DNA of 60,382 nt, filler included, from Trichosphaerium sp. ATCC 40318 (taxonomy: Eukaryota > Protista > Tubulinea), in the NCBI GenBank assembly GCA_038496445.1. It is 3 parts of 3 records of this genome, joined end to end, with 100 filler letters (N's around TTAATTAATTAA, not from the genome) between each part and the next. Parts side by side here need not be neighbours in the genome. Positions count along the whole stretch, not along the records: positions 33,755 to 60,382 come from JALMLS010000066.1; 2 more parts are not named here. The stretch is one strand, 5' to 3'. The notes beneath the pieces were generated by a model. That model worked only from the letters and a program-made list of their open reading frames with translations. It was not told the DNA's origin and ran no database searches. Position numbers and translations under genes: made by a program. How positions within the stretch are numbered: position 1 is the stretch's first letter; each line of letters begins with the position of its first letter. Shown here piece by piece: positions 41,768-58,669 of the stretch.

Positions 41768-41854
41768 TCTATTATTGCTTGTACTTCTGGGATAGGCCTC
41801 TCGCAGGATTCTAATACGTTTGTTTTGTACTTCTGTTAAGAATTCTAAATAAAT

Positions 41855-43438
41855 TTATTTAATAAAACGTCCTGTTACATTAAAAAAACCTAATTGATTT
41901 GCTTTGGTATAAAATTGTTGTGTTTGCAGTCTACTTAAAGCGTCAGCAAGGGTATTTTCTTCTGAGGGAATCCAAGTTGCAGTAAGCCGGAATCCGAATG
42001 CTGCCGACCATTTATGCAGATCGTATATCATCTTCATAGCTCTGGAATTGCGCATTACCAGTCTGTTGACTGATGCAACTACTCCTGTATTATCCACTAA
42101 TAAATTGTTGATAAGTTTATTGGCAAATAAGTGTTTCCATTCTTTTATTGCCATCCACACCGCATACATCTCCTTAACATTGATATGCCATTTTTTTTCT
42201 TCTTTTGTAAAGACATGGATAAGCCATGAACCATTTAAAAACGCGCCTGCTGCTATGTTTGAAGCGTCTGTTTGAAACAAACCTTTTGATAATGGTAACG
42301 GACATAGTAAAATTGCCTTACCATTCCATAGGTCCATCATATCATGCCACCACTTTAAGTCTTTTTGCATTGCTGTTGTCTTGTGTACCCACTGTTCATT
42401 ATTGCTATAGTGTCTTAAGCCGTCATATATCCTTCTTAGGTATGTATGTCCCCCATATACAACCTGAGCCGCAAAGTTTAATGTACCAGTAAGTTGTTGC
42501 CACTTCCTTAACTTCGCTGACTTCTGCTGAAGAAACCAAACCACCAATTTTTTAATTTTTGTCCTTTTACGCTCTGTTAAAGTAATCGTACGCTTGGCTG
42601 TGTTGATCTCATAGCCCAGAAAGGTGAGGCACTGTGTTGGACCTTGACACTTATCTTTAGACATTTCGAAACCTAAATTTTCTAGTATTTTCATTAGCGT
42701 TTTCATTGCAACTTTAACTTCTTCTTTAGATCTTCCAATAATCAACCAATCGTCGAAGTAAACAACATGAAAGCTAAAGCCTATTGACCGCAAGTACCTA
42801 GAGATCATGGCCATCAACCTAATAAATACTTCTGGCGCTCTATTCCATCCAAAGGGAAGCCTACCATCCTTATATAATATTCCTTTCCATTCAAACGCTA
42901 TCAAATCATGATGTTTAGGGTTTACTGGTACCATTCGATATGCTGAAAACATATCCTCTTTACCTAACCATAAGACACTATTACTGTTGTTTCTAATAAA
43001 GGTTAAAGCTTCTTTTAGAGCTGTTAATGTAAAACTTTGTGGTGTTTCAGATAGATCATTAACTGAAGTCCCAATAGGAAGATTTAAACAAACCACTTTA
43101 CGTATCTTATTTCGGAATTGTCCTTTGTCATCATATTTTGGTATTGCTGCTATTTTGTTACATTTTCGTACCTTGTTAGCCTTGTAAATCCAGCCTCTAG
43201 ACAACTCTAAGTTTATATCTTTGCTTACTAGAGTGCTCCATTGATTGCAAGTTTTAGAATTTTCTACTCTTGTTTCTTTAATCACTGTACCTACTGGAAC
43301 TAAAGAGATACCTATTGTAATCCACCCCGACAACCACACCCAATCCTTATCTTTACTCATTAATGAGGACCATAATTTAACTTTTTTAGACATTAACGCT
43401 GCTGAGAAAGAGAACGAAAGTTTATTGAGTACAGGCAA
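41855..43438 (-). CDS. Reverse transcriptase / RNase H of the retroelement
   Basis: KEDMFSAYRMVPV, LPFGWNRAP, YFDD, FLGYEIN; RNase H motifs TDAS, INVKEM, VDN, NTLADALSR. Confidence 0.95.
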   Translation of the reverse strand: MPVLNKLSFSFSAALMSKKVKLWSSLMSKDKDWVWLSGWITIGISLVPVGTVIKETRVENSKTCNQWSTLVSKDINLELSRGWIYKANKVRKCNKIAAIPKYDDKGQFRNKIRKVVCLNLPIGTSVNDLSETPQSFTLTALKEALTFIRNNSNSVLWLGKEDMFSAYRMVPVNPKHHDLIAFEWKGILYKDGRLPFGWNRAPEVFIRLMAMISRYLRSIGFSFHVVYFDDWLIIGRSKEEVKVAMKTLMKILENLGFEMSKDKCQGPTQCLTFLGYEINTAKRTITLTERKRTKIKKLVVWFLQQKSAKLRKWQQLTGTLNFAAQVVYGGHTYLRRIYDGLRHYSNNEQWVHKTTAMQKDLKWWHDMMDLWNGKAILLCPLPLSKGLFQTDASNIAAGAFLNGSWLIHVFTKEEKKWHINVKEMYAVWMAIKEWKHLFANKLINNLLVDNTGVVASVNRLVMRNSRAMKMIYDLHKWSAAFGFRLTATWIPSEENTLADALSRLQTQQFYTKANQLGFFNVTGRFIK

Positions 43439-43453
43439 CGTTAATTTTGATTG

Positions 43454-45202
43454 TCACCTTCTTTGATTAGGACAGGTATTATGCCAATGTCCTTTTATAC
43501 CACAACTGAAGCACACATGCTTTAGGTAACATCCATTTGGGCGTCTGGAGAAGCGACAGTTATCACTACTCAATGAATTCGCTTGAATACAGGCCAGGTG
43601 ATCATTGGTGATGTTCCAAGGGTTGTTTCTGCTACCAACTTGAGCATCGATCACTTCTTGCTTGGTGAGTGGAGGGCGTCTAGGTTGCTGTTGCCGTCTT
43701 GGCCTTGGTGGACCTCTAGGTTGATTGTTGGGTTGTTGAACCGGCCCTAGGTACATGTTAAAGTACAACTGAGGAACCAAGTATGGAGAATCAGATCGTT
43801 CCCAGAATTTTCTTACTGCACGATCAAAAATGAGTACCTGCTGCTGCGTATACATTGACAATAGGGCTAGCACTTGGTTGTGGTATCTTTGATAGTGCTC
43901 TAACATAGTCTTCGAAATAAGACTGTTGGTCATATCTACGTTTGCTTGGCGGAGGATCAAACGAAGACGCATAATCAGATCTGCGTCGCTGGTTATCGGA
44001 ATGGCTTTGGAGGGCCTGTGTGAAAGCACTGGTGAGCTATCAAAGACATTAAAAGACTGTACAAACTCTGGAAAATAAACTGGGTTTTTTATACCAAAAC
44101 GTGTAATTCCACAAATCAAAGGAGAGTTGGTGAAAGTTTTTCGAAGTGCTGCTGCCTCTTCGGCACTTACCGCAGTGAAATCTGAGGGCATAATACCCTG
44201 AACCAATGGTGTAGGCGTTGTTTTTGCCATCAGTCCATTGTACGGCGCTGTAACATTGTCAAAAGAAAAAGTATCTGTTTTTGGAGTACCTTGTTGGTTT
44301 TGGTACTGATAAGGGTTAGGTAGCCCTGTTCCTGTCGCTGTACCCTGGTCTGGTACCGACTGAATGCCTTGTGTAGGGCGTGGCGGTGTAGCCGTAACCT
44401 CCGTGGTCGCAGAGTTCTGCAAGCCTACACGAGAGGCATAAGAAAGACAAATTTCTCTTGCTTTTTCCAAAATTTGTAAATCTTTTTTGGTTTTTGTCCA
44501 CGTGCCTTCCGGTTCCTTTGAGGCTTGTTGTTGTTTAAGCTCGTCATTCAGAGCTTGATTTTCTTTCTGAACCACGTCCAGTTGCCGTTTGAGTACTTCT
44601 GTTTGTCGCTGGTAGTCCTCTGTCGCTTGAATTAGGTTCTGTACCAGTTGGAGCTGCTCTGGACTAGAAAGATCCAGATCCTCGCGAATTGTAAGGTCTT
44701 CGGAGGAAACTCCGGCTAAAGCAGCGTCAACTTCAGAGTCATCAAAAGAAGGTACATCCTGATTATTTTGAAAATTTTTATCACGTGACGGAGATACCAA
44801 TGAAACTATTTTTGAAACAAAGTTCTTTTTCGGTGTTTGAGGCTTAAAAATGTTTTGGAGGTTTTCCATATGCCTTCCGGACATATTTAAAAAGGTAGTA
44901 CCTATTTTAATCCAGTCCGGATACTTTTTCAACTCTACATCTGTAGCGACCTGTTCGTAAATCTCCAGTATAGTATCTCTGGATTGCGCCATAATCTTAT
45001 CCCACAACTGTGTCCCTTTAATTTTCTTGTCGGGATCAAGGTTAACCGCCAGGAAATTAACAAAATCCCGCTTGGTTGCCTTCTCTTTTGTTTTTGAAAA
45101 CTCACGGAATTGTGGAGCTGCATCCACAACAATTTTATACCAGTATGGGCCTACGCCTAAATACTTACCAGTATCACCAATGTTTTGATTGCTACTCGCC
45201 AT
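43454..45202 (-). CDS. Gag-like ORF1 with coiled coil and C-terminal CCCH plus CCHC zinc fingers
   Basis: CIQAN...C...C..KH then CFSCGIKGHWHNTC; the ATG lies within repeat A1. Confidence 0.9.
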   Translation of the reverse strand: MASSNQNIGDTGKYLGVGPYWYKIVVDAAPQFREFSKTKEKATKRDFVNFLAVNLDPDKKIKGTQLWDKIMAQSRDTILEIYEQVATDVELKKYPDWIKIGTTFLNMSGRHMENLQNIFKPQTPKKNFVSKIVSLVSPSRDKNFQNNQDVPSFDDSEVDAALAGVSSEDLTIREDLDLSSPEQLQLVQNLIQATEDYQRQTEVLKRQLDVVQKENQALNDELKQQQASKEPEGTWTKTKKDLQILEKAREICLSYASRVGLQNSATTEVTATPPRPTQGIQSVPDQGTATGTGLPNPYQYQNQQGTPKTDTFSFDNVTAPYNGLMAKTTPTPLVQGIMPSDFTAVSAEEAAALRKTFTNSPLICGITRFGIKNPVYFPEFVQSFNVFDSSPVLSHRPSKAIPITSDADLIMRLRLILRQANVDMTNSLISKTMLEHYQRYHNQVLALLSMYTQQQVLIFDRAVRKFWERSDSPYLVPQLYFNMYLGPVQQPNNQPRGPPRPRRQQQPRRPPLTKQEVIDAQVGSRNNPWNITNDHLACIQANSLSSDNCRFSRRPNGCYLKHVCFSCGIKGHWHNTCPNQRR

Positions 45203-45679
45203 TGTTGTTGTTGTTGCCTATTGTGTCCTTCGATATTGACAGTCTTGTTCAGTCCAACCAAACGCTTGAAATGTTCCACATCTTCATTCATGAATACAAA
45301 GCAGACAGTGCCTGAAGGTCGTACCAAGGGTTGTACATTCCTATATGAGGGCGCTAAACATATCAAGGTAAGAAATTAGGTGAGTTGGGTGCCAACACTG
45401 ACAGTAACAAGGCTTTATATTTAGAACATATCTTAGATGAGAATGAGAGCCAACAGCACCTCCATTGTGTTTACCATTACGGGTCGTGTTGTGGTAATTT
45501 ATCACGTGTTGACGATAGTTTAACGCACAGAACGCTTGTAGTAAAAGTTGAGGTATTTAAAATATGCTAACGTTGGAGTAAACTGAACACAGTGGGATTT
45601 CGCATTTATTCAGTATCCCATAGTTTTTTGCATTATTTTTCAATGGGTCAGTTTTTCTTTCGCGTTGAAATGACATTAT

Positions 45680-48006
45680 TCAATTCATTGGCGTTATTTT
45701 TGCTTCTTTTGCTATATTTCTTATTGACCAAGGTACTATAGCTGTTCTGAGAGGTTTGATGACAAATACAGATATCATGAATGCTACAAAAATCTAGTAG
45801 AAAATGAGTAAATGCAAAGAAACCAAGTGGATCTTACAAACAAGAATCCACCAGTTACACCAAGTACTATTGCTACAGTATTATCGCCAGGACATTCACT
45901 GATGATAGCTAACAAATCAAGACCTGTAGGAGAGCGTTGCTGTTCATGATCAACACAATCGCTGGCTACTACTTGAACATCGCCATTTATACAAGGTGAT
46001 GAAATAACATTGATTACTTGCTCAGATGATGTGTCAACACCGGATATGTCAACAATAAATGAACTATTAGACAATATCACCAAGCATCCTAAAGTTATAG
46101 TCAATACAATAACTCTACGTTGTAGATGATATCATTACCTTTCACAGAAAGTGTGGTAGTTTCATCGTCAACCACTAGAATCACATCGCCATTGTTTGTG
46201 AAATCACCTTCAATCACTGTAGGCTCAGTTATGCGTACAGCAACAGTGCTAGGTATATATATACTCCTATTGTATGTACATTCTGTTCTAAGACACTGAA
46301 GGCAAGTGCTATTCATACACTCTAAGGTGTTGTTTACAATTCTTGAGCTTGTAGGTGCTGGAGTAATTGCTAGAACATTAATAAGTACTAAGTTATGGAA
46401 TAGATACTCACGTATACAATCGAATAGACGATCCTGAGGTTTAATGAAGGCATTGTATTGCATATTCTCTGCTGACGCCAATATCTATGTATCTATTGTT
46501 ACAAATGCTTTGCATTCATCGAAAACGTACAAACAGAACACAACTATGTTTGTCAATAATACCACTAATAGCATATTTAGGCAAGTTCATTGATAACTGT
46601 TTCTCAATGACTGTTTCCTTTAAGAACATTACTGGGAATCCAATAAGGTAAGACTGTTGACGTACCAAGGTAACATTTGATGAATACTTAATATTTTGTG
46701 TTGTATTTGGGTAGAAATACAGAAAGACAAATGGAGAGGTTGTAGAAGATCCAACGCTTATGGCAGATAATTCAGGAGCACTGTTGAAAAAATCAGACTG
46801 CACTAACGTTATTGATCCACATGTAGATGTGATTATGGCTGAGTAAGTGTAATTCAAATCATCCACTTGCAAATGAAGAACATTTTGATCCAAGTTGTAT
46901 CTCAAATATACTCTCTGTACTGATTCTAAAACAGCTAGTGCATCATGTTCAACCGCCTAAAACAAGTGTGAATAAGAGAGGTTGTATAATAAACTGTACA
47001 GGAAGGGAGCTATTCCAGTATGTGAATTTCACATTTCTATGCAGATTGCGGAGTGATGCAACCACAAAACAGCTTTGATTAACGAATACAAGTGAACTAT
47101 CAACAATACTTGTATTATCAACTTTAAAAAATGTGTCAGTGATATAATAAAGTAACAACAATGAATCGCACATCCAATCAACACAGGGTCCAATCCATTT
47201 TCAAGAATGTAAGTGTAAGAAGGTCCTAACTTTACAAAACAATGAAGCAAGTATTTGTTCACTTTATCTAAAAAGAGGAGTTAGCGCTAACAATGAATGT
47301 GTATGTCGCACATTCTACAATTGAGTTTCTTGAAGCGTCTAACGAGTTAGCCATTTCTTCTTGAAATAGAGTGTCGTTGGTAACTTCAATTGTCTTTTCA
47401 CAAAAAGGTAAGGTTGGGTTTCCGTATTCTTCTCACCTACCTTTGTACTTATGTCCAAACGCAAAAACAATACTCGCAAACTTCCGTCTATATTTTTGTA
47501 CACCGAAACAAATTCAGGTTGGTGTACTAAATTTGATAAAGTTGGGACTTTCGCATCTGAAGCATTCGCTACAAACAATGGTTCAAAAGTTCGACTTCCA
47601 GCACGCCAATCTTTTCAAAACGTTAGTACCGATTAAAAGTGATTATTGAACCATTACCTTGTATGGTGGTTACCGCTATACTGACTCCAACATCCAATGT
47701 TACATTATTTGCTACAGTGTTGTTAAAAACAAAATTGTTTTCAAAAAAAGTGTCGTTTACTAGCACGTGACACAAAGATGACATAAGTAGCGTCCGCTGT
47801 TCGTATTGATCCTATTTCTGTCGTTCCATTTTCTCTCATTGTGTGTTTAGTTTCCATCACCCAATTGGAGTCAAAAAATTCATCTTCTAGCGCCCCACGC
47901 GCGAACACTATAAAAAAATAAAACTAGAAACAAATTGTTTTTTCTTACCAGTTACCCATATTAATGAAGTAGTTACGGTTAAATAGAGTCCTAGTGTACT
48001 AAACAT
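45680..48006 (-). CDS. Tandem-array type-I membrane protein, copy C
   Basis: Close paralog of copy B with the same exon structure. Confidence 0.8.
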
Positions 48007-48534
48007 ATTCAATTTTAACTTGTTCACGCGAAGATAAAACGTATTCGCTAGTTGGTCAATACTAGTTTTCCACGTGCACAATCTGACAAACCGAGTTGGC
48101 TGAAGTTATTAAGTACATCCAACAAAGCAGAGGTAGCCTGAAGGTCGTAGAAAGGGTTGTGCATTATTATATGACGACGTTAAACATATCAAGGTTAGAA
48201 ATGGGGCGGATTGGGTGCCACAACTAACAGCAAGATTATTGATACTTGGCTAATGAGCAGAAAATACTTGGTGATTGATTGTTTGATTGATAAATCAAAA
48301 CGTGAAAGAATACTTTGGAAAGAACAGGCTGGTACTGAATACAAACAGCATTGATTCATGGCGCACTTGACTAAAACGTACACTTCTTATTGTTACTCAG
48401 TTCACTGTATCTTCCTTCTCACTGCCTAGGGTAATCCTTAGAAGCAGAACCCCGTAAGCCAATAAGTATTCTTAGAATGTTGTGACCTATTTCAAATACC
48501 AAGCATTTTATTTAGCTACAACTTTCCTTTGATA

Positions 48535-50833
48535 TCAATTCACTGGTACTACTTTTACATCTCTTCTTAAACTTCGGAGAGACCATGGCACAATAGCTTG
48601 ACGTAGAGGCCCGAATACAAATACAAATATGATTAAAACAACAAATAGCTAAGCACAACATTAGCAAGTACAAAAATAGAGAAGTTGTATTACTACTAGG
48701 AAACCAAACATTACTCCAAGTACAATTGCTAAACTATTGCTATCACGTGTACATTTGCGTTTGATTAAAAACAAGTCAATGCCATTGTTAGAGCGTTGTT
48801 GTTCATGGTCAACACAATCACTGGTTATTACTTGAACAATGCCGTTAATACAAGGTGATGAAATAGCATTATTCACTTTGTCAGATGATGCGTTCACTCT
48901 TGATACATCAATAACAAATAAAGTATTTGGTTGTATCTCAAGGCACCCTAAAAAAACGGTTAACTAGTTACAGTTGGTCTCTAATACCTTCAACAGTAAG
49001 AGTGGCGCCCTCGTTGTCTTCAACTTTTAGAATTACTTCGCCGTTGTTTGTGAAGTCACCTTTGATTACTGTAGGCGATTGAATAGTTACAATGGCATCA
49101 TTAAGTACGATAACATTAGCTTCTATCACACATACTGGTTCCATTGGATCGCATTGAATACAACAACTATCCGTACACTCTATAGTTCTTGCTAGTAAAG
49201 GAGTAAACTATCTGTTTTTTAACTACTACATACAACTACAATCAGCGAAGTCTGATGCATTTATGAATGCGCTATATTGATCATTCTCTGATGCCAGTAA
49301 CACCTACATAAGTTTAAGACGAGTTAAAAACGAATAACATACTAAAAAAAGACAGTGTTGTTCATCCAGAATGCCTTGAATCTCCCCTGGTGAAAACGGG
49401 CTGTTTATTTGGGTAGTTCTCACTATTTTCTCAACAGCGTTTCCCTGTATCTTGTAAATAATTATTTATCACGTGTACTGTCATTGAAATACCAATTGTG
49501 GGGAGGAAGACAACATGAAATCAGTTGTGTTGTTGTCAAAGAATACAAACACAAATGGAGTGTAACCTGAGCCATGAGCGTTTATAACTGCTACAGGGGC
49601 GGCATCAAACGATACCTGAAATTGTCGCACAACATCTGCTGTGATTTTTCCTGTTCTGAAGCCTAAGTTGTGATTGCAATTACCTACCAACTTGTGAGAA
49701 GTAGTAATGGCCACCCCTGTTTCTAGCTCTATCTGCACCACCAAAGAGTTTTTGAATAGATTGTATTCTACACTATTTATGTTTCTGATTGGCGCTGTAT
49801 GAACAAAAGCACTGTCCTTCAGTTTAAGGTTACGTTATGAACAGTTTTTACAACACAAACTTACTCCTTCTAACTCAAGAATTCCGTTCTTTTCAGTGTC
49901 AAAATAAGTGATTCGCAAGAATAGAGTTGCGTTAATACTACGTGCAAGCAACAAAGTTGTATTGTGAGCAACTGCAAAGTCGAAATCTGTTACAATTAGA
50001 CTACTATACAAAAAACCCGATATCCCTACAATATGTCATGACAACATTCACGACATAGACATTCAATGGCGTACGTTTGGGGCTTTGGTCTTGTTGAAAC
50101 TCGAACGTTGCTCTTTCGCTATGACTAGTTCTACTGCGAAGCGTGAAGAATGAAACGTAGTACGTATCTAACAGCCGTTAACATTTTGTAGTGCAAATCT
50201 CGTACCCTCATATGATACGAATGTATATGATATTAGTACAATACTCTGAGATAGAGTAATCGGAAATGAATGACTCGATGTTATTGATAACTCCTTGATA
50301 AAACGCACGTGATATTAGAAGCAATACTAAACGTTATCTTACCTCTGTAGAGAGATTAAGGCTCACGAATGTTACACCAAAGCTTGTATCGTTTCCGTTT
50401 CTATGCATCATAGCGAATACTGGCGAATCGCTTATGTGCACATCTTTGGTTAACTTTGGATCTCTAATGTTCACCGAGATATAACGAAGATTGCGTACCA
50501 TCTAGCGTTGTCACTGTAACAATTACACCAGGAACAGATGCTTTGTCTATCAAATAAGTCAATATGAAACCAAACGACGCTAACCACCTGCATTAGCTGC
50601 GAAGATGTAAAAAGTAGTGTTGTATGCTTCTAAAGCGCTCATAGTTGTTGTTCCAATTGAAGATATTTCAACTCCTTCAAGTATCCCACGTGAACTAAAA
50701 AACTGATCCAAAGGTGGCGCAGGGCTGAATACAACTAACATGCATAAATAAATAACCGTTTAAACAATAATTCTACTTGAGTACCTGGTAGAAATAAAAG
50801 CGAGTACAGTATAGCAACGGCGATGGTTAACAT
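48535..50833 (-). CDS. Tandem-array type-I membrane protein, copy D (divergent; integrity uncertain)
   Basis: MLTIAVAILYSLLFLP; SSPCINGIVQVITSDCVDHEQQ; TM helix; PLRQAIVPWS. Confidence 0.7.
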
Positions 50834-51031: not shown

Positions 51032-53466
51032 TTAAACAGTTTTTGATTGGGTTACTTGACTCATAGCTGCTAATTCATTTTTGCTTAGAGACCAAGGTAC
51101 AATTGCCTTTTGGAAAGGTTTGACCACAATTACAGAAATGATGAAAGCAACACATATCTAATCCAACAATGTTAAGATAGTAAATAAGTGATCAGTCTTA
51201 CTTACCAATAAGAAACCAAATGTTACACCAAGTGATATTGCCATAGTACTACTTGTACTATTTTTAGTTGAACATGCACCTATGGTTAAAAATAAAACAA
51301 GTCCTGTTGTTGAAAATTGCTGTTCGTGATCAACACAATTGTATGTGATGACTTGAACAGTCCCATTTATACAAGGTGATGAAATAGCATTGATCTCTTT
51401 ATCAGATGATGTGTCCACTCCTGATACATCAATCACAAATGAACTATTTGGTAGTATCACTAAGCATCCTAAATACATTTATTACATTGTAATAGATTAC
51501 AATACTTTACAATAATATACCTTTTACAGTAAGAATGGGAGTTGTTTCATCATCGAATACTAGAATCACTTCACCTTTGTTTGTGAAATCGCCATCTATC
51601 ACTGTAGGTGCTTTTATAGTTGTAATGATATCAGGAGTGATTAGTACACCTGATTCACACATGTTGTCATTGAGTCACATTGTAGATAAGAGCTATTTGT
51701 ACATTGAAGTGTTTTGTTGTGAGTACTTTGTTTTTGAGGGAGTGATGGCTACGTGATTACTGAACCAGTGGGAGCAATGATGGGTTGTATATTGGCACTG
51801 AATTGGTCGTCATGATTTCCAATTAGTACCTTGAATAATATCGTTAAAAGATTGTTGTAACTAGCACGTAGCAAAGCTAAACGTACAACAAGAATGCAGT
51901 GCTGTCTATCAAGGATACCTTGAACTTTTTGAGCAAAAAAAGGGTGCGCAGGCAAATCCTTCTTTACCAGGTTATCCTATGGCTTAGGTAAAACTCTGTT
52001 ATCGTGTTATGGTCGTACCAATCGCGGAGATGAAGAAAACGCCACAGTAGTGTTAGGAAATGGATCATAGTGCATATAAACAAATGGAGAAATAGCTGAT
52101 TTATCATAAGTGTTTACTGCTGTTGCTTCTCCATTTTCGAATATCACGTGATGACTCTCTGCGAATTTCGCATGTTTACAATGTTATTGTATGTCCATTT
52201 CGAATAGCGCCTTTAAAATAGTCGTATTTTGCAAATGTAGCTGGATTACCAAAGAGGCAGTGAATGAGTTGTATTCAAGATACTCAATATCTGTTATTTC
52301 CTCAGGTGCTGTTTCATTGAACACTTTTTGTTTGGTGGTCTTGTATTTTTGGAAATTAGTCACATTTAATAACGTTGACAAGCGTACAGTATTCAAAGAT
52401 GTATCAAAGAAAGTGAAGGAAATCATATTCAAGTTGTCGAACCAGGCATGTAAAAAACAATTTGGTCCAATAACTTCGAACAAAGCATCAGAAACAAATA
52501 GATTTACACCTAAGCTTATCAGTTTGAAAAAAAAATTATTAATTTAGGAACAAATTACTGCTAGTGAGTTTTGGATTGCAATGTTCTTCAAGCTCGAATG
52601 TTTCCGCAAGACCTTCTTGTTCATTGAAAAAACAAAAAACATAATATTTGCCTACCAAATAATCAGATTTGTTCTCTTTACATACACATATTGTACCCTC
52701 GTGTGATGTAAATGTATGCCTGCTTACGCCCCCAGACTCTATTATAACAGCAAATGAATAGGTTTGCGAAACTGAAACAACCTTGCACGTGATATTAGTA
52801 AAAAGCGATTTGGAAAATTGTGGCTAGCACCTTTGTTGATAGATTAAGATGAAGGAACGATACACTAAATGCGGACATAGGTTTGTGCATCATAGCAAAC
52901 GTTGTAGAACCGTTAATAGAAATAGAAGTGGTCAGTTTTGGATCTCTCGTTTGTGGAATGAACAAAGGCTTGAATGTTAGGTTTCCAGCAATCCAATCTA
53001 ATGGTTGTTAGATATAAATGTGGTGTCCGTCGCAAGCAAGTTGCAGAAAACCAAGAATGTACAGATTTTTTCACTTGCTACGCACAAAAGCTTCAAATTT
53101 AAAGATTGTATTCCTTACCATTGATTGTTGTCACTTGTACAATTACACCGCTTGTGCCATTTGAATCTATCTCAATATCGTTAATAATTTAGATATTTGT
53201 AAAATTAAAAAGATTGTGACGCACTCGCGTTAGCAGCAATGATATAATACGTTGTATCACGTGTTTCTAAAGCACCTATATTGGCTAGTGCGAGCTGTGT
53301 TATGTTAGGTCCTTCTAGCACGCCAGTTGAATTAAAGAATTCATCTATGGGAAACTGCTGAGCTAGTACGACTAAAAAAAAAAGCTTTTTCAAATATTCA
53401 GTGCGTTCAAAGCTTACTAGGTAACACTAACATCAAATACGGCATAATTACAATACCGTTTACCAT
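51032..53466 (-). CDS. Tandem-array type-I membrane protein, copy E (possible frameshift near 51680)
   Basis: Same C-terminal module and AIVPWS tail. Confidence 0.7.
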
Positions 53467-53822: not shown

Positions 53823-56381
53823 TTATAAGGCTGAGTTATTTACTTGGTTCATGGCAAGCTGTTCTTTTGGTTTTCTGAGAGACCAAGGTACAATTACCTT
53901 TCTTAGAGGTCGAAAGACAAACACAGCTACGATTATCACTGCCAAAATCTTTTACAATGACAAGTAAGTAGAAATGTTTCCAACGAGTTACAAAGACAAC
54001 TTACCAATAAGAATCCAAATGTTACTCCAAGTGATATTGCTATTGTGGTGCTATCACTGGAGCATTCTCCTGCTATGATAAGCAATACAAGCCCAGTTGA
54101 CAAAAGTTGTTGTTCATGATCAACACAATCACGAGTGATTACTTGAACAGTCCCATTTATACAAGGTGATGAAATAGCATTGATCTCTTTATCAGATGAT
54201 GTGTCCACTCCTGATACATCAATCACAAATGAACTATTTGGTAGTATCACTAAGCATCCTAAATACATTGATTACATTGTAATAGATTACAATACTTTAC
54301 AATAATATACCTTTTACAGTAAGAATGGGAGTTGTTTCATCATCGAATACTAGAATCACTTCACCTTTGTTTGTGAAATCGCCTTCGATCACAGTAGGCG
54401 CACTTACAGTCACAATGGTATCAGGAGTGATAATAATATCTGAATCAACCACACAAGTTGTCATTGAGTCACATTTAAGACAAGAGCTATTCACACAAAC
54501 AAATGTTGTGTTTGAAGACATGGGCGTAAGCATGGAAGGAGCAATATGAAATGACGGAAAAGAGCTTGGCGCTGACGGATACATAGATGGAGATACAGGC
54601 GTAAGGGTAGAAGGAGCACTATGAACCGACGGAATAGATGTTGGCACTGATGGAAACATTGTTGGTGGCGAAGTGCTAATCGTGGCTTTGATAATAATTA
54701 ATACTGAACTGCCTGAAAGTTACGTACAACAATTAAATAAATAATCACGTGATTGAATAAAGGCAGTGTATTGGTTTGTTTCTGATGATAGCAATACCTT
54801 TGATTTTGAAAGTTAATAACAATGGAAGAAAAAGTAAACGACGTACAACAAGAAGGCAGTATTGTTTGTCAAGGATGCCTTGGATTACTGTTAGATTACC
54901 ATTTTGAGTTGTTATTTCCTTCTGTAATGTGTTATTCTACATAACATGTTAACTCCAAAAGTTTACGTATTAGCAATACCATTTGTGGACTTGAGGAAAA
55001 TGATACTGTACTTGTACTTCCGTTGAAGTGAATATAGATGAAAGGAGATACTTGTGATATATCTTGAGTGTTTACAGCTGTTGCAGGTGCTTCATCAACA
55101 GGTGCACAATATTCGACCTCGTCTACGGGTGCAATTGCCAATATTTCTGTCAGTCCTATTCCAAACGTTGCAAGTTTGAATTGTGTTGTAACAGAAATTC
55201 CTGTTTCTAGGAGTATTTGCAAAACAGCAGAAGCATCTGAATTAAACTCAACGATTTTAATGGATGCTATTCCTGTTTTGAACATATCGAAAATAGTTGC
55301 GTCCCCCTCCCTAAGCTGAACTCATTAGTACTATTTTGTCAAATATAAGAACGTACAACGCTTTGCCCAGATGTATTAAAGATTTGAAGTGTCACATTAT
55401 TTTCATAAGCGCGCATCTGATATAGATATAAGTAAGTTTGTATTAGTTTGACGATTGAGAATGTCGAATCTAATGCTGTATTATTTCCATCTACATTAAG
55501 TAAGTGGATTGAACACTTGACAAGATAGTGTGCCGCGAATGAGTGTTGGTTCTTTGTATTGATGAATCTCAAACATCTTTTCTGTACTCTCCTCTGTGTT
55601 AATAAAATGAACAAAATATCGACCTAAACCTTGTCATCTTCAACATCTATTGTTTAGATTTGCACCTGTATTCGACACGAATGTGTATGATGTTGCAAAA
55701 TCTGCTTGACCTTCAAATGAAACGGTAGAATTTATCAAAATCGACTAAAATAAAAACCCTGTCAACAAGTGACGCGAAGAAAGGAATTTCTTGGAACCTT
55801 CGCTGGCACATCTAGGCTCAAGAACATTGCCCCAAAGCTAGTTTCGTTTCTATGCATCACAACAAAGCTTGGATAATCGTTTAGGTCGACAGCATTGGTT
55901 AACTTGGGTTCTCTAACGCCTGGAATGAAGAAAGGCGTGAACGTTTGGTTGCCAGCAAGCCAATCTATTGCCGATAGATAAGTAAAAATAAAACATACTC
56001 TTTGCGTACCATCAATGGTAGTCACTGATATAGTTATACCGGGAATAGCAAACACTACAAAGCAGGTAAAAAGAGTGTAATATTTAGAGTGTAATTTTTA
56101 TTTCAGGTGCACCTGCGTTCGCTGCGAAGATATAGTATGTGGTGTCACGTGTTTCTAAACAGCCCATATTCGATACACCGATTGACGATATTCCAGGACC
56201 TTGTAATATCTGACGCGACTCAAAAAACTCATCTAACGGCGGTGTTGACGCGAACGCTGCTACAAAATAAAATAAATCAGTATCTATGTCTAACTATATT
56301 AGTTTCATTACCAGGTATTGATAATACGATTGAGTACATCATAATACACACAACATAACTAAACATCTGTTTGTTCTTCAT
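53823..56381 (-). CDS. Tandem-array type-I membrane protein, copy F, with an expanded Pro/Ser/Thr stalk
   Basis: PSVPTSIPSVHSAPSTLTPVSPSMYPSAPSS stalk; 54130-54385 is nearly identical to 51340-51600 of copy E. Confidence 0.75.
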
Positions 56382-57751: not shown

Positions 57752-58669
57752 ATGGAATTAACACACAAGGTAGTTACGTCTATCACACTAGTGACATATC
57801 AGAGTTATACCAAAAAAGTGGATCATTGTGGTATATCGTACCTCCCAGTTGAGCTGCAACTTGATATTTTAGATTTAGACTTTGAAGTTTATGTCAAGTG
57901 GCCGCTTTTATCAAGGTACACAGCATTGACAAGGTTTGACAGCGCCCTGGAAAAACATGGAAAGTGGGTACAATATCACTATAATTATAGCTGTCAACTG
58001 AAAGTACGAGAGTATTTCAGGCACGGTCTGCGTCATGGAACACGCACAGAGTGGGGAATAAACGGTGATTTAGATAGCGAGCACCAATACATAAATGGTA
58101 AATTGGAAGGAGTGCGCACGTGGTTTGGCTTAGGCCTATCGAAGAAGCGGTGCTACTACTCTAATGATAAGCAAGAAGGAGAGTATAGTAGGTGGAGTTT
58201 TGTTGGCCAATTGCAAGAGCAGTACCATTTTGTCAATGATAAGCTAGAAGGCGAGTACAAGTGTTGGTATTCAAATGGGCAGCGTAAGAAACAGTGTTAT
58301 TACATCAATGATAAGTTGTATGGGGAGTTCAAGTATTGGTATTATATTGGCCAATTGAAAGAACAATGTTATTACATCAATGATATTCGGGAAGGAGAAT
58401 ACAAATGTTGGTACCATAGGAAACTGTTTTACTACAACAATGATATGCCTTTCACTACTGATAATTGTCAATTGAAAGAACAATGCTATTACATCAATGG
58501 TAAGCGGCAAGGAGAGTACAAGTATTGGTATGAAAATGGCCAATTGAAAGAACAATGCTATTACATCAATGGCGAGCGGCAGGGAGAGTACAAGTATTGG
58601 AATGACAATGGCCATTTGCAAGAACAATGTTGTTATATCAATGATAAGCGAGAAGGAGAGCACAAGTAG
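57752..58669 (+). CDS. Intronless F-box-like plus MORN-variant (YwqK-type) repeat protein
   Basis: YLPVELQLDIL, then about 9 repeats of ~24 aa: GEYKYWYENGQLKEQCYYINGKRQ. Confidence 0.85.
   Translation: MELTHKVVTSITLVTYQSYTKKVDHCGISYLPVELQLDILDLDFEVYVKWPLLSRYTALTRFDSALEKHGKWVQYHYNYSCQLKVREYFRHGLRHGTRTEWGINGDLDSEHQYINGKLEGVRTWFGLGLSKKRCYYSNDKQEGEYSRWSFVGQLQEQYHFVNDKLEGEYKCWYSNGQRKKQCYYINDKLYGEFKYWYYIGQLKEQCYYINDIREGEYKCWYHRKLFYYNNDMPFTTDNCQLKEQCYYINGKRQGEYKYWYENGQLKEQCYYINGERQGEYKYWNDNGHLQEQCCYINDKREGEHK

Follow-up and report, generated by a model that had tools for sequence, protein, structure and literature searches.

How does a retrotransposon obtain its reverse transcriptase when the reading frame for that enzyme follows gag in the same frame, behind a stop codon? 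The question is raised by a tyrosine recombinase (YR) retrotransposon on the minus strand of a 60,382-nucleotide stretch of DNA from Trichosphaerium sp. ATCC 40318 (assembly GCA_038496445.1), here called the window; the element lies in the piece at positions 33755-60382, taken from record JALMLS010000066.1. An earlier note on this DNA proposed that programmed readthrough of a leaky TGA joins Gag to the reverse transcriptase/RNase H (RT/RH, or pol) product. Re-reading the minus strand returned exactly the junction given there, ...AGA AGG TGA CAA TCA AAA TTA ACG TTG CCT..., with the TGA at the same position (Table 1). Translation of the open reading frames (ORFs) agreed that gag and RT/RH are in the same frame and that no stop but this TGA separates them, the pol frame then being open from 43453 to a TAA at 41857-41855. 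We consider it likely that programmed readthrough of the gag TGA yields a Gag-RT/RH fusion in this element. The proposal gained support from a second copy or allele of the junction, from 13 relatives with a single TGA, and from coding constraint past the stop in those relatives.

Decoding of TGA as a sense codon was ruled out, as no other in-frame TGA occurs within the three ORFs of the element and the YR ORF itself terminates in TGA; the note had likewise taken TGA as a normal stop in this DNA. Another explanation is that the TGA is a nonsense mutation peculiar to a dead copy. The piece does hold only one copy, since BLAST with the element found no other in 33755-60382 and matched its own repeats only. 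We nevertheless reject this explanation as hardly credible. The split direct repeats of each pair match at 100% identity and none of the three ORFs is interrupted, which marks a young, intact copy, and distant relatives have TGA at the homologous position. Public sequencing runs cover only small parts of the element, as contigs. One of these, a 233-nt contig from the run designated X1, spans 43429-43661 with a single difference, a synonymous GGA>GGG at 43490 in the zinc knuckle, and leaves the TGA and its context unchanged. This contig is a second copy or allele retaining the TGA; the sense codon that the note had allowed for in other copies is not what it carries.

Relatives of the RT/RH are distant (one fragment 53% identical, the remainder 27-37%); they carry RVT_1, in some cases fused to PF00589. 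Junctions were read by script in the DNA surrounding these relatives and at 44 additional metagenomic loci, which an alignment of five of the relatives had brought up. An alignment of 12 sequences proved too diverse to find loci with, scanning metagenomes with the RT/RH of the element itself gave no matches, and the N-terminal 260 residues of pol returned no relatives. Wherever a long ORF upstream is in frame with pol, exactly one stop intervenes and it is always TGA, which in the relatives comes directly after the gag zinc-binding motif. This layout was found in 14 sequence-distinct lineages including the window's (13 others), which form at least five separate groups on the RT tree, two more not being placeable; for the contigs of P0003, P0006, P0009, and P0011, frames were judged from gene coordinates only, and gag and pol are in frame by these in the contigs of P0003 and P0011. 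The base at +4 is C in 12 of the 14 lineages, and no stop context in eukaryotes is leakier than UGA followed by C. The pol ORFs of the same loci terminate in a mixture of TGA, TAG, and TAA, which speaks against a mere preference of the hosts for TGA.

The residues encoded immediately past the stop are conserved in the relatives (LPLxxxPLNxxLW...). Over the first 40 codons past the stop their synonymous sites are saturated, with a nonsynonymous divergence (dN) of 0.25-0.5 and a nonsynonymous-to-synonymous ratio (dN/dS) of about 0.1-0.25. By these estimates purifying selection acts on the 40 post-stop codons, which precede the first AUG, a statement that concerns the relatives and not the window's own family. 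The first AUG in frame is not reached until 41-51 codons past the stop in L001, L003, and L008, within the conserved block; because conserved codons precede it, translation must enter the frame at the stop.

This constraint bears on a scheme in which ribosomes terminate at the UGA and reinitiate at AUG 43393, giving separate Gag and RT/RH proteins. That AUG is merely 60 nt past the stop, but reinitiation leaves the shared frame, the TGA-only rule, and the relatives' constrained pre-AUG codons unexplained, and after a 582-codon ORF it is very inefficient in eukaryotes without special signals. We regard it as very unlikely. Even less probable, in our estimation, is that the stop is recoded by another route, either A-to-I editing of UGA to UGG or selenocysteine insertion, both of which would likewise demand an in-frame UGA specifically and could be linked to the hairpin predicted nearby. 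A comparison with Rfam found no RNA family in the piece, including the selenocysteine insertion sequence (SECIS), and the +4 base, C in 12 of 14 lineages, points instead to leakiness of termination. As for editing, the X1 contig has A, not G, at the third stop position (contigs drop rare variants), and the edited A would have a 5' G, the neighbor that ADAR likes least.

Sister lineages show a second layout. In L018, L019, L022, L034, and L036, pol is in the -1 frame relative to gag, the two overlap by 22-103 nt, and a slippery heptamer stands in gag phase within the overlap, as in classical retroviral frameshifting. The gag stops of these five lineages are TAA or TAG, which, together with the mixed pol stops, makes the TGA rule specific to the in-frame junction. 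The in-frame-TGA and -1 layouts are interleaved on the RT tree. Given this interleaving and the slippery heptamers of the sister lineages, Gag-Pol fusion by recoding would be the rule in the group, and the simplest reading of the comparison is that recoding is how these YR retroelements come by their Gag-Pol, the group having moved between readthrough and frameshifting just as retroviruses and LTR retrotransposons did. At the family level, the readthrough interpretation is supported by these junctions. One clade has neither recoding layout: in L009 (1436-4479) and its kin P0012 and P0013, pol follows gag after a gap of 251 nt and in another frame. The same clade includes an Amphimedon protein of 805 residues in which RT and YR are fused.

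We then considered the surroundings of the stop in the window element. The 72 nt from the UGA fold at -14.1 kcal/mol, where shuffled sequences give -5.85 (z -3.7; none of 200 shuffles did as well), into a predicted hairpin whose 3' arm extends into ATG 43393. A stem at nt 9-13 past the stop is likewise predicted in three relatives, L006, L008, and L041. The window shows no enrichment of the 9-mer TGACARYYA (5 occurrences, 3.3 expected), and arithmetic puts this context at about 1 in 300-500 TGAs; on these counts, the CAATCA hexamer is notable solely for its position at the gag stop. Stop-CARYYA, UGA-CUA, and UGA-CGG are known readthrough contexts. We take UGA-C to be the common core of the signal, with hexamer and hairpin as candidate enhancers.

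A series of observations weighs against readthrough in this particular element. No close relative of its family was found, and CAATCA and the hairpin come from one sequence. The window RT sits on a long, unplaced branch of the RT tree, and descent of its layout from the TGA lineages can be called plausible. The earlier note had identified the bases after the stop with the tobacco mosaic virus (TMV)-type CARYYA signal and looked to other copies and relatives for conservation of both stop and signal. CAATCA does fit CARYYA, and the in-frame stop recurs in the X1 contig and in 13 relatives; the hexamer is in no relative, other contexts being used instead, mostly TGA CTN but also CCT, CGG, GAG, and ACG. 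The hairpin prediction is without covariation support, a 121-nt fold is no better than shuffles (z -0.67), and consensus folding across eight loci of the L001 clade found no structure in the 120 nt that follow the stop (-0.6 kcal/mol). The conserved pol block of the element, KLW...DKDW..., which aligns with RLW...D.D... in the relatives, begins downstream of ATG 43393. The argument from pre-AUG constraint is therefore not applicable to the window, and a pol protein initiated at AUG 43393 would lose nothing recognizably conserved.

On the same side stand the facts that favor the main rival, a spliced or AUG-initiated pol message, which we hold to be unlikely. In its explicit form, which the note had itself named as a refuting case and which is distinctly unlikely in our judgment, pol would be made mainly from a spliced subgenomic or separate mRNA, either starting at AUG 43393 or fused to an upstream gag exon, and the TGA would be an ancestral leftover. 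The conserved pol block downstream of the AUG agrees with this. Four GT/GC-AG introns are removed from gag in public-run contigs, so the host spliceosome acts on element RNA and a spliced pol message is conceivable. A strong acceptor-like sequence, a pyrimidine tract plus CAG at 43402-43420, stands 8-11 nt ahead of ATG 43393, and by arithmetic the phase 1 donors of the 81-nt and 42-nt introns would keep frame with an exon from 43401 or 43398. GTACTC at 43432-43427 is the same hexamer as two used donors, and AATAAA is found at 43426-43421, just past the gag stop. X1 has no contigs on RT/RH, an absence that proves nothing. However, no contig contains a junction of the kind proposed, and the AUG is buried by the predicted hairpin. 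A spliced message would need no frame co-linearity, no TGA, and no C at +4, yet the relatives keep all three, and their coding constraint begins at the stop itself. Separately, the X1 contig across the gag stop ends at 43429, and a gag-only polyadenylation or splice site may lie at 43389-43435.

If the gag TGA is read through, most ribosomes would halt at the UGA at 43454-43456 and release Gag, while a minority would decode it with a near-cognate tRNA and continue in frame to give the Gag-RT/RNase H fusion. Readthrough would probably be assisted by the +4 C and by the CAA UCA context, and the hairpin 9 nt downstream may contribute as well. The role of the fusion would be to deliver RT/RH to assemblies of Gag and RNA in a low, fixed proportion, like gammaretroviral Gag-Pol. 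The ORFs of the element gave no Pfam match to a protease or DDE integrase, and because no protease is encoded, the fusion presumably stays uncleaved. Comparison of sequences shows the layout, the single in-frame TGA kept by distant relatives, and the constraint on their first post-stop codons; from these we infer readthrough itself, its efficiency, the roles of hexamer and hairpin, and the fate of the fusion.

Gag-pol readthrough in itself is textbook. Murine leukemia virus (MuLV), a gammaretrovirus, makes its Gag-Pol by readthrough of UAG-G with a pseudoknot. The element resembles it in having gag and pol in one frame, a single leaky stop, structure about 8-9 nt downstream, and Gag-Pol at low ratio, of which the layout is observed here, the hairpin predicted, and the product inferred. 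MuLV differs in its UAG-G, its proven pseudoknot, and its own protease, which cleaves the product, whereas the element has UGA-C, a hairpin predicted from a single sequence, and neither protease nor DDE integrase. The CAA TCA of the element fits the TMV type I signal exactly, but TMV has UAG CAA UUA, in a plant virus replicase, and the element's hexamer is unconserved and at chance frequency in the window. Most relatives resemble the alphavirus type II signal, UGA-CUA or UGA-CGG, in having TGA CTA, CTC, or CTT, or TGA CGG in L041; all of these share UGA and +4 C with the window element, whose next bases are AA, not UA or GG. Among the frameshift-layout lineages, L018, L019, L022, and L036 have the same A AAA AAC heptamer in gag phase as gag-pro of mouse mammary tumor virus (MMTV) and human T-cell leukemia virus (HTLV), again with a short overlap and pol in -1. 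This is not the layout of the window element and is relevant only as evidence that Gag-Pol in the group is produced through recoding.

The element, ~4.95 kb long at ~40342-45295 with ends accurate to a few bases only, is a YR retrotransposon of the Ngaro type, in the DIRS order, that was inserted recently and appears to be intact. ORF1, ORF2, and ORF3 are all open in one and the same frame (translation of 45400-40700), and they comprise an ORF with RT and RH, with three weak RNase H-type Pfam matches, and a tyrosine recombinase. The 532-codon ORF2 has no Pfam match to a methyltransferase domain. Split direct repeats run in the order A1...B1A2...B2 with B1 abutting A2, in place of long terminal repeats (LTRs) or inverted terminal repeats, and the A-B junction is also present in a contig of public run X3. 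In published accounts that cite Goodwin and Poulter 2004 (PMC3783388, PMC9210276, PMC3266345), Ngaro elements share the order gag, RT/RH, YR, the arrangement A1-ORFs-B1A2-B2, and the lack of methyltransferase, protease, and DDE integrase; these accounts give the ORFs as non-overlapping or overlapping and mention no readthrough or frameshift signals at gag-pol. The note had described DIRS and Ngaro ORFs alike as usually overlapping, which is right for DIRS1-like elements but not for Ngaro, whose ORFs are usually non-overlapping (PMC3266345).

Table 1. Features of the element in window coordinates, and gag-pol junctions of its relatives
Feature	Position or locus	Strand	Detail
Split direct repeat A1	45180-45291	minus	112 nt, 100% identical to A2
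gag-like ORF1	43457-45202	minus	582 codons unspliced, ATG 45202 to AGG 43459-43457
gag intron, 81 nt	44425-44505	minus	GC..AG after 2-nt shift of ambiguous joint; skipped in X1, X2
gag intron, 42 nt	44248-44289	minus	GTACTC..AG; skipped in X1 contig
gag intron, 134 nt	44037-44170	minus	GTAAGT..AG; skipped in X1 contig
gag intron, 91 nt	43747-43837	minus	GT..AG on sense strand; skipped in X1 contig
CCHC zinc knuckle CX2CX4HX4C	43472-43513	minus	gag C terminus, five residues before stop (translation)
gag stop TGA, proposed readthrough site	43454-43456	minus	unchanged in public-run contig
CAA TCA, fits CARYYA	43448-43453	minus	hexamer absent from relatives
Predicted hairpin	43393-43444	minus	10-bp stem plus 2 bp, begins 9 nt past TGA
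First in-frame ATG of pol frame	43391-43393	minus	20 codons past stop
RT/RNase H ORF2	41858-43453	minus	532 codons, gag's frame; Pfam RVT_1 E 1.7e-17
RT/RH stop TAA	41855-41857	minus	TAA ATT; YR continues in same frame
Tyrosine recombinase ORF3	40790-41767	minus	from first ATG; frame open from 41854
YR stop TGA	40787-40789	minus	TGA CGT GGG TAG, TAG two codons later
Split direct repeat B1	40680-40781	minus	102 nt, 100% identical to B2
Split direct repeat A2	40569-40680	minus	112 nt, 100% identical to A1
Split direct repeat B2	40367-40468	minus	102 nt, 100% identical to B1
TGA CTA junction	L001/2, L003-5, L006, L008, L014, L025		
TGA CTC or CTT junction	L010/11, L013, L021, L043/45		
TGA CCT junction	L026/27		
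TGA CGG junction	L041		
TGA GAG junction	L024		
TGA ACG junction	L044/50		
TGA CAA junction	window element		
A AAA AAC in gag phase within overlap	L018:1300-1309, L019:1650-1656, L022:1674-1680, L036:1091-1103		
C CCA AAA in gag phase within overlap	L034:3285-3291		

A word search found no sequence relatives of ORF1, whose C-terminal zinc-binding motif is similar to that in the ORF1 of the RT/RH relatives; a regular-expression search located the knuckle 19 residues from the ORF1 end. Splicing of gag is inferred from the GT-AG ends of the segments skipped in the contigs, the kind of library behind X1 not being on record. The four introns total 348 nt, or 116 codons, so that the fully spliced ORF has 466 codons and is open to the same TGA; spliced and unspliced gag forms are both in frame with pol. 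Translation by script of the joined exons showed that excising the 91-nt piece alone or the 134-nt piece alone brings in a premature stop, and the 200-nt exon between these two introns has two different open frames, one spliced and one unspliced. Introns thus stand inside a retrotransposon ORF, and the 200-nt exon may be dual coding.

The Phage_integrase match of ORF3 (E 1.3e-5) scores 25.4 bits, slightly below the cutoff of 27.1; in the ORF3 translation, a C-terminal Tyr and the motif HxxR can be seen. Upstream of the first YR ATG (41767-41857), a block of ~20 residues resembles the YR N termini of L007 (929-1117) and L003 (2267-2400); in L006 and L008 the YR starts later than in these two. 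The block may be dispensable, or translation of the YR may start ahead of the ATG, through non-AUG initiation, through splicing, or through another readthrough event. The RT/RH-YR junction of L007 is TGA CGA, likewise in frame.

The element interrupts one unit of a host tandem repeat of ~3.1 kb. Flank alignment identified an uninterrupted unit with the empty site near 48080-48122, which differs by about 45 nt at the junction, so that the exact ends, and with them the absence of a target-site duplication expected of a Ngaro-type insertion, cannot be set. Units of the repeat at 37579-39665 and 45647-47727, and also at 33767-35176, are 90-93% identical, with remoter copies (~70%) at 48581-49076, 51090-51608, and 53862-54406; the units are without a long ORF. 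Only one other long ORF occurs in the 33755-60382 piece, at 57752-58669 on the plus strand; its 305 codons consist of tandem units of 72 nt (24 residues), which match the MORN_2 variant of the repeat (E 2.5e-12).

Readthrough or frameshift signals at the gag-pol junction of YR retroelements are unmentioned in PMC3783388, PMC9210276, PMC6681497, PMC3266345, PMC7192593, and PMC8547959; the primary descriptions of Ngaro and DIRS lie outside this set, and an earlier remark may be found there. We advance a wider proposal only tentatively, as somewhat short of probable: that Ngaro-type elements, which are without protease, make, as a group, a permanently fused Gag-RT/RH by retrovirus-like recoding, with repeated switches between UGA readthrough and A AAA AAC -1 frameshifting, a strategy not described before, and that here the readthrough site lies 3' of an alternatively spliced gag, both forms of which are in frame with pol.

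Retroviruses and LTR retrotransposons have recoding of Gag-Pol as a hallmark; it sets the ratio of structural to enzymatic protein, and a protease later frees the enzymes. Use of both readthrough and frameshifting by YR retroelements, if true, would extend the Gag-Pol fusion strategy to an order of retroelements with quite different integration chemistry, and RT in these elements would work while still fused to Gag. For ORF2, which annotators at present mostly begin at an internal AUG, it would also supply a simple rule: look for one in-frame TGA followed by C, or for A AAA AAC in a short -1 overlap. The natural UGA contexts CUN, CCU, CGG, and CAAUCA would join the candidate readthrough signals of eukaryotes.

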